From: Phaeosaccion multiseriatum | Taxonomy: Eukaryota; Protista; Ochrophyta, other classes | Reading direction: 5' to 3' | Assembly (NCBI GenBank): GCA_965112735.1 | Contig: OZ218958.1 | Location: 1,674,001 to 1,738,000, forward strand | Length of the DNA: 64,000 nt | Shown: piece by piece, positions 1,263 to 7,087 of the stretch | Position numbering within the stretch: position 1 is the first letter of the stretch | How the letters are laid out: each line of letters begins with the position of its first letter | Made by a program: the position numbers and the translations under genes | Notes under the pieces: generated by a model | What the model saw: the letters and a program-made list of their open reading frames with translations, nothing else | What the model was told of the DNA's origin: nothing | Databases searched by the model: none

Positions 1263-1574
1263 CTGCTAAGGAATAGGTGTTGACTGCGAAGGAAGGGGTG
1301 TTGCTGCCTGCCTACCTGGCTGCCTGCCTACCTGGCTGCCTGCCTGCCTGCCTACCTACCTACCTGCCGTGCTTGCTTACTTGATTGCGGAAGGAGGAAC
1401 GATTGATTAGTTATTAGCAAAGGTTGTTACCCTGGGATGAACTTAGTAAAGTACTGACGTAAGGGGGGGGGGCTGCTGAGGCGGCTCCTCTTCGATAGCA
1501 TGCTAAGCTAATCTAATTCAATTTGAGCTTACAATTGGGGGGGCTCGGGCTGATAATCCTGCACACACACGCAG

Positions 1575-3947
1575 CTCGACGCTCTCGGCGAGAAACGACG
1601 CCCCATCGCAGTAAAGGAGACGCTCACCCGCCTCTTTCACTCCACCCACGGCATCCACTACAAGCCCGCCTACCAGGAGGCATTCGAGAGCGTCGGCCAG
1701 CTTGGCGTCGCGACGAAGAACGGCACGGAGAAAGTCGCCAAATCCGCCCAACTGCTCCACGACATGGGCTACTGGGTCGCTACCAGCGACCTCCGCAACG
1801 CCCATAACGAAGTCACAACCGCGGCCACGCTCACGGGAACCGCCCTCGTCGACCCCCGTGGCATCGAGCACAACATCGCCGCCCTTGGGAAGGACCGCGA
1901 CCTCATCTACCTGTCTGACGACGGCAACCAGCTGCTACGCACCAACCGCGGCAGCGGCGGACAAGGCGACCCCGAGGCCAGCAAGAACTTCTGCTGCGCA
2001 CTCTACCCCCTCCAACAGAAGTGGACCAACGAGGCCCGTCAGGAGGGCATCCCCGCACCCCGGGCCTACCAGGGCGACTTCGTCCACCCCTGGCGCGGCA
2101 ACCTCGCCGACTTCGAGCCCACTCTCGACACCTTCACCACCGACCTCGCCTCCATCGGCCTCACCCGCCGCACGGACAAGCAACGATACCTCCCCCCCCC
2201 GGGCCACCACGTCACCATGGAAGAGCGCGCCTTTGTGGACCGCACCGGCGGCACCATCATCGAGGACGGCGGCTTGAGCATTGTCGGCCTCCCAATCGGC
2301 CAAGACGACTTCATCAGAGGTTACCTCTCCCAACTCATGGTGGACGGACCCGACAGACACGCCTTCCTAAACCTCGCCGAGCAGATCGCCCTCATGCAGG
2401 AGACACAACCCGCCCTCCTCCTGCTCACGAAATCACTCTCGCCAAAACTCCAGCACTATCTGCGCGGTGCCGCCCCCGGCCAGACGACCAACACCATTGC
2501 CTCCCCCGGCGACGCCCTCAGCCTCGCCGTCGGAGAGGCCCTACTCCAACTCCCAGGAGCGGACACCATCGGAGACATCATCGCCAGCGCACCCTCGGAC
2601 CGACTGTCGCACCTTCAGCTCGCCTCACACCAGCACCAACAGATGTTCCTTCCCCAGTCCCAAGGAGGTTGGGGCTCCCTCTCCCTCACCAACACCGCCA
2701 TACCAGCCTACCTGGGCGCAGCTGCCGACACCCTCCAGTCAGTGATCACACCGGGAGCCATCTGGCCAGAGGCGGACCTACGCGACCTCGCCCCAGCCCT
2801 CCGCCAGAGTAGCTCCGTCCAACACATCCTCACCACCATCCAGGCCGCCGCCGAAGACGGGACCCTCTCCCGACAAGACCTGGAGATGAATCTCCCCCTC
2901 CCCCTGGTCAGCCTCGCGCTCACCTCAGCAGCGGACCGCCAACGAGCCGAGGACGCCTTCGACACCAGCCTCGCCCAGGGCAACTGGGCCCCGCAGCAGC
3001 AGACGCAGCGCGCCCTGCAGAGATGCCTAGCGCCGCAACGCCGGGACAAGTACCGCGCTTCACTGGACCGACTCCCCGACGACGCTGCTGCTGCCGATAC
3101 CGGCATGGAGTCTCGCCGACAGGCCAAGTCTCGGCACCTGAGCCAGAGCAGCGACGGGGCCATGGGCTTCATCGCCACCTCACCTGGACAGGTCTCCATG
3201 CCGGCCCAAGACATGGTAGGGGCCCTACGACGCTCCCTCGGCATCAACTGCCTGTACAGCCCTGGGGAACCCGACGCACTAGTCTGCACCCGCTGCAACA
3301 CACGCGCCGACTCCTCTCACGCCATCCAGTGCCCCAACCAGAGCACCCTATACCACACCGGGATGCTCTCCTCCGTCGAGGACATGTTCAAGCAGAACTA
3401 CGTCTCCCGCGTCGGACACGAGAGCTCGGAGCTCTTCAACCCCCCGCACAACATCGCCCGGACCTTCCGCATGGACGCCACCCTCCCCCGAGGCGCCCTC
3501 TCCGGAGCCCGCGACCCCACCTTCGCCCACCCGGCGCACATGCTTGACCTAACCCTGAGTAACAACCTCTGCAGGACGGCCTTGAATGTGCTCCGCACGG
3601 ACATTAGACCGGGAGCGGCAGCCGCCAACAGCGAGACCCGCAAGGAGCGACATTACAGGGGCACCTACGACCGAGAGCGTGTTCGCCTCACCACCTTCGC
3701 CATCGAGACCCACGGCCGACTCGGCGCACAGGCGCAATCGCTCCTGCACGCACTCGCCGAGCACGTGGTCACCCGCACTGGCCGCACGGGCTCCTCCACC
3801 ACCAAGGGCCACGTCCTGACACGACTACGCCGCCTCGTCAGCTGCAGCCACCAGATGTGGCTCTCGGAGCGGGAGCGCGCCTTCCTGGGTCGGCTCAACC
3901 GCGGAGCCGGTCCCGCACTCCCCCTCCCCGCCCTAGAGGGGGAGTAA
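1575..3947 (+). CDS. RT-RLE polyprotein fragment, about 790 codons, N-truncated, catalytic YxDD read as YQGD
   Basis: The frame of ORF 1764-3947 stays open back to the TSD. Motifs: RPIAVKE, QLGVATKNGTE, DLRNAHNEV, QGDP, AYQGD, LPQSQGGWG (thumb), CTRC-x7-H-x3-C, RMD...LDLT...ETRKERHY...FAIETHGRLG (RLE). Confidence 0.88.
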   Translation, partial: LDALGEKRRPIAVKETLTRLFHSTHGIHYKPAYQEAFESVGQLGVATKNGTEKVAKSAQLLHDMGYWVATSDLRNAHNEVTTAATLTGTALVDPRGIEHNIAALGKDRDLIYLSDDGNQLLRTNRGSGGQGDPEASKNFCCALYPLQQKWTNEARQEGIPAPRAYQGDFVHPWRGNLADFEPTLDTFTTDLASIGLTRRTDKQRYLPPPGHHVTMEERAFVDRTGGTIIEDGGLSIVGLPIGQDDFIRGYLSQLMVDGPDRHAFLNLAEQIALMQETQPALLLLTKSLSPKLQHYLRGAAPGQTTNTIASPGDALSLAVGEALLQLPGADTIGDIIASAPSDRLSHLQLASHQHQQMFLPQSQGGWGSLSLTNTAIPAYLGAAADTLQSVITPGAIWPEADLRDLAPALRQSSSVQHILTTIQAAAEDGTLSRQDLEMNLPLPLVSLALTSAADRQRAEDAFDTSLAQGNWAPQQQTQRALQRCLAPQRRDKYRASLDRLPDDAAAADTGMESRRQAKSRHLSQSSDGAMGFIATSPGQVSMPAQDMVGALRRSLGINCLYSPGEPDALVCTRCNTRADSSHAIQCPNQSTLYHTGMLSSVEDMFKQNYVSRVGHESSELFNPPHNIARTFRMDATLPRGALSGARDPTFAHPAHMLDLTLSNNLCRTALNVLRTDIRPGAAAANSETRKERHYRGTYDRERVRLTTFAIETHGRLGAQAQSLLHALAEHVVTRTGRTGSSTTKGHVLTRLRRLVSCSHQMWLSERERAFLGRLNRGAGPALPLPALEGE

Positions 3948-3982
3948 CCGGCCCCTCGCGGGCCCCGGAGACACAGCGACAC

Positions 3983-4028
<46 letters not shown>

Positions 4029-4075
4029 TCACACTTTCAGTTTCTTAGGTGATTCCTATTAAGTCAATAAAGGCC
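1575..4075 (+). mobile_element. 5'-truncated non-LTR retrotransposon, CRE-like clade (RT + CCHC finger + restriction-like endonuclease), flanked by 14-bp TSD GCACACACACGCAG
   Basis: Identical 14-mer at 1561-1574 and 4076-4089. One intron-free, C-rich reading frame begins abruptly inside RT (KRRPIAVKE) with no start codon. The 3' UTR holds (CA)n and a terminal motif. Confidence 0.9.
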
Positions 4076-4276
4076 GCACACACACGCAGGTGCTCACAAA
4101 TCAAACATATCACCAACAAGCTTTCCTATTTTTTATTTCCCCCTGATTTCCCCCCCCCGCCGCCTCCTCTCTCTCTCTCTCTCTCTCTCTCCCTCCAGTC
4201 CTTTCCATACCCTCGCGGATACAGAGCTCGGGAGGGAGACAAAACAAATTCGGGATCAATCTTTCCCTCCGCCTCC

Positions 4277-4838
4277 ATGAAGCGCTGGCTGCAGGGGGGA
4301 TCGTCTGCCTCTGAAGGCAGCGATTCGTCTTCGGAAAGACCTGCGAAGCGCGGGAGGGACGAAGGCAGCAGCAGTAGCGGCAGCAAGATGCCAGTCAATT
4401 TCTTCTCTTTCAATGTCAACAGCCTGAATGCACGCTGCAAGAACGGCGACGGCCGGAACATTGCGAAGACCATCCTCGAGAATGAGTACGATATTGTCCA
4501 ACTGCAAGAGGTGTGTGGAGGAAGAACGGCTGTGGATGCTGGATGTGCAGGGGTCTTGCCATTGGTCTGACGGATTGGCTGTGCATCTGGCTGTGTTTTT
4601 TGCAGGTCAAGCTCAAGTCTGAAAGGGATGGTGCGCGCGGGGTGGTGTGCGAGAAGCACAAAACTGCCGTGAGCGTGTTCGTCGCCAGCCTAAAGCCGCA
4701 TTATCGCCTATACTGGTCCCTGTGCCACGACAAAGGATACGCAGGTGGGAGAGTCGTAGCTACATGTACTCTGTTGGCAATGCTCACAGGCAGACGGTCA
4801 GGCGCAAGAGCACGTTAGCTGGGCTTGAGAACAACTTC

Positions 4839-4900
<62 letters not shown>

Positions 4901-7087
4901 GTCTCTCTCTCTCTCCCTCTCTCTCTCTCTCGCTCCCCCTCTCGCTCCCCCCCCCCTCCCCCCTCTCTCACACACACACTCGTCACTAGCGCTCACTCTG
5001 TCTCTCCCCACCGCCCGTCCCATCTCCGACGAAAAGGCACACTGACCTTGCTGCATAGAAGCCTCGGGCCAGTAGCGGTGCGCCACTGCCTCGACGAAGA
5101 AGAAGAAGAACAACAAGATGGCGTCAAAGCCAAAGTACACGACCACGAAGGGCGCATCACGGTTATTACCACAGAGCGGCTCACGGTGCTGTTGACGTAC
5201 GCCCCCAACAGTGGCATGGATGACCAAAAGGGGCTGGAGCGGAGGGCAGCGTGGGATGCCAAAATGAAGGACTTTGCGCAGAGGCTGCACGCGAAGGGTA
5301 TGCCCCTCGTCTGGGGCGGAGACCTCAACGTCGCCCCGCACAACGTGGATATGAGTCACGTGGCCTTCTTTAAGAAAAAGAATCAGCCGGTGAGGCAGAG
5401 GGGAGCGAGCGGAGGGAGGGAGTGAGGAGGGGTACAAAGAGTTGATTCGTAGGGGCGCGTGGCAAGGGCATGGCAGCGGTGCTTCTTCTGTTCTGCTCGC
5501 GTAGGGAGCGTGTGTGGAGTGTGTGGAGCGAGAGTCGTGACAGCTGAAGCAAGGAGGCCGAGTGGGAGGCAGAGAGGGAGTGAGGCTGGCATGGCATGGT
5601 ATACGAGTTTGCAGCGGAGACACACACGCCTGCCCTGCCCGCCCTCGCGTCTTACGCTTGGCTGCTTGCCCCAAACTACCCCCCCCCCTTCGCCTCCTCC
5701 TCCTCCTCCTCCTCCTCCTCCTCCTCCTCCTCCTCCTCCTCCTCCTCCTCCTCCTCCTCCTCCTCCTCCTCCTCCTCCTCCTCCTCCTCCTCCTCCTCCT
5801 CCTCCTCCTCCTCCTCCTCCTTCTCTTCCTCCTCCTCCTCCTCCTCCTCCTCCTCCTCCTCCTTGTCCTTGCGTTCACTGACTTAGGGGTGCACCGATCT
5901 AGAGCAGACAAGCCTCCTCGACATTATGAAGCACGGTAAGTAAGCTGCAGATGGCAGCCCATGTATGTAGGGCATGCTGCAGATGGCAGTCCATGTAAGA
6001 GCATGCGACGAGAAGTGAGCAGGCCTGCAATCCTCCCTCTCTCTCTCTCTTTTGTGCTGCCCCACCACTCAAGGTGCATCTCTCAAGCATTCCTAATTTA
6101 AGTGACTTCCTTCGAAGTACTTCATAGTATGAGTTTTGCTTCTTCCTCCCCTGGGCCGACACTCGCCTTCTCTCAATGCCAGTGAAATTGAAGGGCGGAG
6201 GAGACTCTCCTCGTTAATCCTTGTTACTCCTCGTTAATCTTTTGTCTTGTACTTAGTACATCACAGGGGTACTGCGGCGTGGCATGGGATGGGGTGGTAA
6301 TGGGTCGCTGTTCGTATTATTCCTTTTCTTTTTCTCATCCACTCGCCCTGTGCATCCCTGCCTCCACGTTCTTTGCCATCATCATCGTCATCAGGTCACT
6401 TGGTGGATGCTTATCGCTTTCTTCACCCCACCGACCACTCCGACTCGGCGCCGAGTGACACCCCGGGGCACACGTGGAGAGGAAACGACAAGGGAATGTA
6501 CAGAAACATGACCATGAGGATTGATTTGTTCCTTGTTAGCGAATCCCTCAAGGACCAAGTGAGTGGTCCCAGGCAGATGGAGAGACGGCTTGTGCCTTGC
6601 TTTGCTTTGGTGCCAGCGGGCGTTCACCCCACCCCCTCCCCCTCCCCCTCTCCTTTTCCAATCACCGCTTTAGTCTTACTTTGTGCCTTTCGCATCAGTC
6701 GCTGCCTCCTTGGCTGAGCGAACGCTTTCTTTCATGCTTTCGTTTGGTCCCGTTCTTGTCTCCTATATTGCAGCTGCTGGAGTGCGACACGGAGGGGCCC
6801 AGCCACTGGGCCCACTTCATGGGCAGGTGAGTCAAGCACTTGGGCATATCGAGCACCGGATGTTTGATGTGTGATGTGTGTGGGTCCGATTAAATCAACC
6901 AGTCGACTCAGTCAGTCAGTCAGTCAGTCAGTCAGTCAGTCCAACTCAACCCCCCCGTGCCTTTGCCTTGGTTGTCCCCACGAGCAGCGACCACTGCCCT
7001 TTGCGGCTGAAGCTGAAGCCGTTTCCTCCCGTGGCTTCTACCGCTTCCCGAGAGGCTGGAATGGAGCACGCGGAAGGCGAGAAGTAA
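4277..7087 (+). CDS. AP endonuclease / exodeoxyribonuclease III family (EEP), 7 exons
   Basis: SFNVNSL, DIVQLQEVK, KGYAG, DHEGR, TYAPNSG, WGGDLNVAP, LVDAYRFLHP, HTW, RIDLFLVS and SDHCP motifs join across GT-AG introns. Confidence 0.92.
5693..5862. repeat. (CCT)n microsatellite, intronic; a similar (GGA)n tract lies at 17575-17790
   Basis: Read directly. Confidence 0.95.

Follow-up and report, generated by a model that had tools for sequence, protein, structure and literature searches.

The insertion at positions 1561 to 4089 of a 64,000-nucleotide stretch of the Phaeosaccion multiseriatum genome (GenBank assembly GCA_965112735.1, contig OZ218958.1, positions 1,674,001 to 1,738,000; the whole stretch is referred to here as the window) raises the question of whether a retrotransposon can both seek out microsatellites and seed new ones. 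A preliminary description of the locus saw a retrotransposon with a restriction-like endonuclease (RLE) that had entered a CA repeat and carried a (CA)n tract of its own in the 3′ untranslated region (UTR), and it proposed that every insertion adds CA to the genome. Our analysis, which draws directly on the anatomy of the copy, the series of related copies in the genome, their target-site duplications, the composition of their targets, reverse transcriptase (RT) and RLE homology, and counts of CA tracts, points elsewhere. With a probability of roughly 0.87, the element (positions 1575 to 4072) is a dead-on-arrival, 5′-truncated copy of a young and dispersed retrotransposon without long terminal repeats (non-LTR), which has a single open reading frame (ORF) and uses loosely defined C-rich targets.

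The family was delineated within the alga’s own 67-Mb assembly. A search with the window protein returned 67 matches with staggered 5′ ends, including a series at 97 to 99% identity that shares a common 3′ end, and a genome search with the final 22 nt of the element found 195 occurrences at ≤2 mismatches, compared with 0 for the reversed control. The copies are dispersed over all large contigs at unrelated sites. A full-length element measures ∼5.4 kb and contains a single ORF of 1,666 aa (L061:4753-9750:-), which encodes, in order, N-terminal zinc and RING-like fingers, an RT, a CCHC knuckle, and a C-terminal restriction-like endonuclease; the reference locus L061 comprises this full-length copy plus flank, with the element running to position 5367. 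The window copy is 98.8% identical to the full-length copy (blastn), which bears out the earlier suggestion of a recent insertion. The shortest copies, down to 22 to 43 nt, consist of the terminal box of the element alone, many such stubs span 22 to 60 bp, and most copies carry 1 to 9 extra nucleotides, mostly T or C, at the 3′ junction. The common 3′ end, variable 5′ truncation, target-site duplications, and lack of LTRs are the footprints of target-primed reverse transcription, the mode of insertion that had been proposed together with the 5′ truncation. A relative from another assembly (P0001) is 84% identical.

The flanks of 46 unique copies were read, and target-site duplications were present in 33 of them, 28 of which are ≥9 bp (median, 12 bp). 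The perfect 14-bp duplication described for the window copy is genuine, since its upstream copy stops precisely where homology to the family starts (junction offset 0) and its downstream copy begins 3 nt past the canonical 3′ end of the family, ...AAGTCAATAAAG, at position 4072. It could be argued that low-complexity, CA-like sequence produced this repeat by chance and that it is no target-site duplication, because CA-like 14-mers are common: one other exact copy of GCACACACACGCAG is present in the window, and 9 matches are found there at ≤1 mismatch, where 0.07 would be expected by chance. We consider a coincidence extremely improbable, however, given that both copies lie exactly at boundaries set independently by homology to other copies and that 14 bp fits the 9- to 16-bp range of the family’s duplications. 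Across the family, C is present at duplication positions 0 to 3 in 16 to 20 of the 28 copies, compared with a background of 30% (p = 2e-3 to 4e-6). A C-rich motif (CCCC/CCTCC-like) lies ≤14 nt from the 3′ end in 32/46 (70%) of the copies, compared with 13.5% of random positions (p = 5e-18); the random controls for the C-rich and CA motifs were drawn from window positions. This type of target site is exemplified by CCCCTGAC. At least 54 distinct loci have YCCC ≤8 nt downstream of the terminal box, and the diverged subfamilies likewise end beside CCCC. Random insertion, with the C-rich starts of the duplications reflecting nothing but genome composition, would agree with the diversity and dispersal of the targets and with a genome rich in GC and pyrimidine tracts. 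Yet it is very improbable, as the motif is 5-fold above random positions in the same window, the enrichment is position specific (duplication positions -3 to +5), and at several sites (L021 and L072) a second, tandem insertion followed once the duplication had restored the target. The family favors loosely defined C-rich sites, not CA repeats.

This preference bears on the central proposal of the preliminary description, namely, that the nuclease recognizes CA repeats and that each insertion, by adding CA, feeds a loop that drives the microsatellite load of the genome. The window copy does sit in GCACACACACGCAG and bear an (AC)21 tract, and targeting of (TG)n by RLE elements has a precedent in Togen (PMC4640811). 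The pre-insertion site, however, comprised ∼four CA units and was therefore no real microsatellite, so that of the reported insertion at a CA-repeat site the CA run stands and the repeat array does not. No empty-site paralogue of the window insertion was found in the assembly when its 5′ flank, a single-copy sequence, was used as the query. Among the 33 duplications, the window copy’s is the only one that is CA-like; the other copies sit in non-CA sites, which is the very observation that the preliminary description had named as counting against it, and CA targeting is therefore refuted on its own terms. The check for CA enrichment at target sites that had been set beforehand likewise found none, with CA/TG runs in the 3′ flanks of 2/46 copies compared with 2.1% at random (p = 0.25). 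Genome-wide, CACACACA lies ≤12 nt downstream of an exact terminal box at 3 loci and TGTGTGTG at 0 loci. Because the element’s CA tract stops 47 nt short of the 3′ end, pairing between tract and target is impossible, and the tract is missing from most short copies. The genome contains 6,414 perfect CA/TG tracts of ≥10 units, and only 44 of these (0.7%) are element borne, that is, preceded by the element’s own upstream UTR sequence; the family therefore does not explain the microsatellite load. On this evidence, the feedback loop is highly improbable, and the (CA)n tract has no link to target choice.

The presence of a (CA)n tract in the element’s own 3′ UTR, as described earlier, is a conserved trait of the family. 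Tracts of (CA)11-31 occupy the same position in 26/26 copies of ≥110 bp, within a plan in which a GC-rich near-palindrome is followed by a CA-rich tract and then by a box, TTTCAG..GATTCCTAT..AAGTCAATAAA. Because this plan recurs in eight subfamilies, including ones at ∼70% and ∼52% protein identity, the tract is an old lineage trait. The stubs made of the terminal box alone indicate that reverse transcription starts at the box and not at the CA tract. The tract might act as a single-stranded spacer between the GC stem and the terminal box, or as a binding site there for an element protein or a host CA-binding factor. The fold of the 3′ UTR RNA is no better than that of shuffled sequences (z = -1.2), and no structure is therefore claimed. 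It is conceivable, although we judge it rather unlikely as a joint proposition, that the internal (CA)n is a functional RNA element and that the nuclease has a real C-tract preference (CCCC/CCTCC), intermediate between those of random and site-specific RLE elements.

The classification of the element as an RT-CCHC-RLE non-LTR retrotransposon is supported by protein homology. The family protein was aligned with 14 relatives (alignment A1) from among the 331 found in an exhaustive HMMER search. The invariant RT columns of this alignment are KxRP, D..A, QG, DD, K, and G.P.G, and its profile matches the RT domains of L1 ORF2p and R2 (E = 2e-13 to 1e-9). Two of the relatives, P0002 and family B, score above the Pfam RVT_1 cutoff. 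A phmmer search of the PDB found no match for the family protein, and only the profile search succeeded; in the latter, similarity to R2 at the sequence level is restricted to the RT domain. Of two protein word-index searches, the first gave 2 matches, and the named matches of the second were all hypothetical proteins of sponges, charophytes, and dinoflagellates. Look-ups of protein clusters and of a protein atlas yielded neither clade names nor informative taxa. In the C-terminal part, the CCHC residues and the E/D/D/K/Y residues of the nuclease form invariant columns in alignment A1. The equivalent region of the full-length copy, its C-terminal 328 aa, was modeled with AlphaFold at a predicted local distance difference test (pLDDT) score of 88.9. 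R2 retrotransposon proteins account for every one of this model’s seven best matches in the PDB, and viral PD-(D/E)xK endonucleases rank next. No Exo_endo_phos match, which would denote an apurinic/apyrimidinic (AP) endonuclease (APE) domain, was found in the 1,666-aa full-length ORF. An RT of the long interspersed nuclear element (LINE) type, followed by a CCHC motif and a PD-(D/E)xK nuclease and lacking APE, is the arrangement of the RLE-bearing non-LTR group (R2/CRE/NeSL/R4/HERO). The N-terminal 779 aa of the full-length ORF (L061:7414-9750:-) contain a C2H2-like finger, a CxxC...CxxC ribbon, and two RING-like motifs, with matches to Pfam zf-C3HC4_2 and zf-RING_11 that fall below the cutoffs (E ∼1e-3). 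RING fingers are no usual component of RLE elements.

The anatomy of the window copy (Table 1) agrees in outline with the preliminary description, which had reported an uninterrupted RT-CCHC-RLE frame truncated at the 5′ junction and, within the boundaries set by the duplication, a ∼40-bp (CA)n tract followed by a terminal motif. The frame (positions 1575 to 3944) is open over 790 codons up to a TAA stop at positions 3945 to 3947. Its first residue lies six residues ahead of RT motif 2, so the frame is cut off at the 5′ junction, and RT motifs 0 and 1 were lost through the truncation. The nuclease residues are located at positions 3420 (E), 3474 (D), 3546 (D), 3642 (K), and 3654 (Y). RT motif C is covered by five other distinct copies of the same family, each of which reads YQDD. 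Only the window copy has a G at the first catalytic Asp, and this YQGD is a change private to a copy that was dead already.

Table 1. Features of the window copy and its junctions (positions in the window)
Feature	Positions	Strand	Basis or remark
Upstream copy of the 14-bp target-site duplication, GCACACACACGCAG	1561..1574	+	Exact match to 4076-4089
5′-truncated element body, 2,498 bp	1575..4072	+	Matches reference locus L061 positions 2879-5366
RT remnant, motif 2 (KRRPI) to motif E (GLPIG)	1575..2300	+	Invariant alignment columns, profile matches
RT motif C, YQGD	2067..2078	+	Codon GGC at 2073-2075
CCHC zinc knuckle (C-x2-C-x7-H-x3-C), upstream of the nuclease	3285..3332	+	Invariant C, C, H, C columns (alignment A1); codons checked
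Restriction-like PD-(D/E)xK endonuclease domain	3420..3944	+	Invariant E/D/D/K/Y columns; AlphaFold model
Stop codon and proximal 3′ UTR with GC-rich near-palindrome GGCCCCTCGCGGGCCCC	3945..3984	+	Conserved in 8 subfamilies
Internal (AC)21 tract of the 3′ UTR	3985..4026	+	Same place in 26/26 copies of ≥110 bp
46-nt terminal box CTTTCACACTTTCAGTTTCTTAGGTGATTCCTATTAAGTCAATAAAG, ending ...AAGTCAATAAAG	4027..4072	+	True 3′ end; start of reverse transcription
Filler GCC, three nucleotides between element end and duplication	4073..4075	+	Atypical filler for the family
Downstream copy of the target-site duplication, GCACACACACGCAG	4076..4089	+	Exact match to 1561-1574

A plausible course of insertion can be sketched by analogy with R2. 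The RLE would nick the bottom strand at a loose C-rich site (CCCC/CCTCC-like on the top strand), and the RT would prime from the exact 3′ end of the RNA (...AAGTCAAUAAAG(U)), in most cases following the addition of a few nucleotides. Synthesis of cDNA would mostly stop early, and a staggered cut of the top strand ∼12 bp away would yield the duplication. The tandem copies at L021 and L072, which share one regenerated target, fit the re-cutting of a preferred motif. The window copy landed off consensus, in a run of four CA units with an AP-endonuclease-like gene ∼180 bp downstream of it.

Several points weigh against interpreting the window copy as a truncated member of an RLE family with C-rich targets. 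Pfam RVT_1 matches neither the window ORF nor the full-length ORF, and the RT call therefore rests on the profile, on transitive homology, and on the motifs. The 46 unique copies with flanks read are a sample out of ∼195, and 13 of them have no clean duplication, several of which are nested or inverted at the 5′ end. The window copy’s own start is not C-rich, and its GCC filler is odd. The order of the nicks and the strand nicked are taken from R2, and these, along with the details of priming and any role of the CA tract, are what we infer.

Among known systems, R2 (R2Bm and R2Tg; PDB 8gh6, 9dou, and 9nl3) is similar in having a single ORF with an RT, a CCHC knuckle, and a C-terminal PD-(D/E)xK nuclease, and the predicted C-terminal fold of the family matches R2 best. 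As in the present family, reverse transcription of R2 begins at a defined 3′ UTR terminus that lacks poly(A), and a few extra nucleotides are found at the 3′ junction. In contrast to the present family, which is dispersed, with duplications of ∼12 bp, and has RING-like fingers at its N terminus, R2 inserts at one site in the 28S ribosomal DNA and has N-terminal C2H2/Myb domains. The CRE clade (CRE1/CRE2/SLACS/CZAR), compared here by architecture, has a similar RLE layout of the early-branching type, in which one long ORF carries a CCHC motif plus RLE after the RT. However, these elements insert site specifically in spliced-leader RNA genes, whereas copies of the present family are dispersed. 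Literature searches turned up nothing specific on CRE-clade elements in algae.

Dong, Kibi, and Koshi are microsatellite-specific RLE elements and, like Togen, sit inside repeat arrays and end in the repeat. The family resembles these four as an RLE element tied to a simple repeat, but its CA tract lies inside the 3′ UTR, and its targets are not CA: most of its copies lie outside the cognate microsatellite, and its 3′ end is not the target repeat itself. Togen, a (TG)n-specific RLE element of the NeSL clade, targets the same dinucleotide (PMC4640811). HERO-type RLE elements are mostly not site specific (PMC4640811), and the family, compared by description only, behaves like this nonspecific kind. 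Both (TG)n-specific (Togen) and nonspecific (HERO) RLE elements have thus already been described. In snakes, CR1 LINEs seed microsatellites, and 41% of the ATA loci of the copperhead adjoin a LINE (PMC3157835). The likeness lies in a LINE with a simple repeat in its 3′ region, deposited at each insertion; the difference is one of scale, 41% of ATA loci compared with ∼0.7% of the long CA tracts here.

Individual copies of the family show further peculiarities. A fresh sample of 19 unique copies (L065 to L084) included six that retain 22 to 24 nt of the terminal box. These begin at or just before GATTCC and have clean 12- to 14-bp duplications (e.g., L073, L074, and L080, at G000:C1:6316600-, C1:6747171-, and C2:5630716-), a pattern suggesting that reverse transcription has a preferred point, very early on, at which it aborts or switches templates. 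At L021 (G000:C5:1528677-1532162), L072 (G000:C1:5962553-5963974), L032, and L057, a mini-copy of the terminal box lies directly upstream of the duplication of a longer copy, yielding three copies of one target (e.g., CCCCTCGAC). Such loci suggest either successive insertions into a regenerated site or a first attempt that aborted and a second that was productive. The 5′ segment is inverted in L008, L009, L014, and L022, resembling the twin-priming inversions of L1; inversions of this kind are unusual in RLE elements. In a rare variant, L055 (G000:C2:4847456-4850616), a poly(A) of ∼21 A directly after TCCTAT replaces the normal terminal box. The copies are also unevenly distributed between the strands of the assembly (reverse versus forward, 110 versus 85 terminal boxes and 34 versus 10 CA-bearing UTRs), an imbalance that may reflect chance or contig orientation.

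Two other features were recorded outside the family. The element lies in the 5′ flank of an exonuclease III/AP endonuclease-like gene (window positions 4268 to 5425, + strand), which has the same orientation and begins downstream of the insertion at a distance of ∼180 bp. Part of an exon of this gene matches Exo_endo_phos at E = 0.003, and its introns appear to contain (CA)n and (CT)n tracts. A second RLE family (L029:25-3894; G000:C1:615665-620968), at 29% identity, has a canonical YADD motif and scores above the RVT_1 cutoff. It is represented by dozens of near-identical copies in two clusters, at 0.6 to 0.78 Mb of G000:C1 and 1.5 to 1.74 Mb of G000:C8, and a 32-bp satellite, GCGCCGGTCATAATCAGTAATCAGGCCGGCTG, lies downstream of it, ∼1 kb beyond the stop codon.

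For this locus, the idea of a retrotransposon that targets and reseeds microsatellites is wrong and should be dropped. In its place stands a young, well-documented family of the RLE type from a stramenopile alga. Three traits mark this family: a loose preference for C-rich sites, very frequent abortive insertions of 22 to 60 bp, and a 3′ UTR plan conserved across diverged subfamilies. The family is of use for the repeat annotation of this genome and provides a modest lead on how RLE elements recognize their own RNA and choose their targets.

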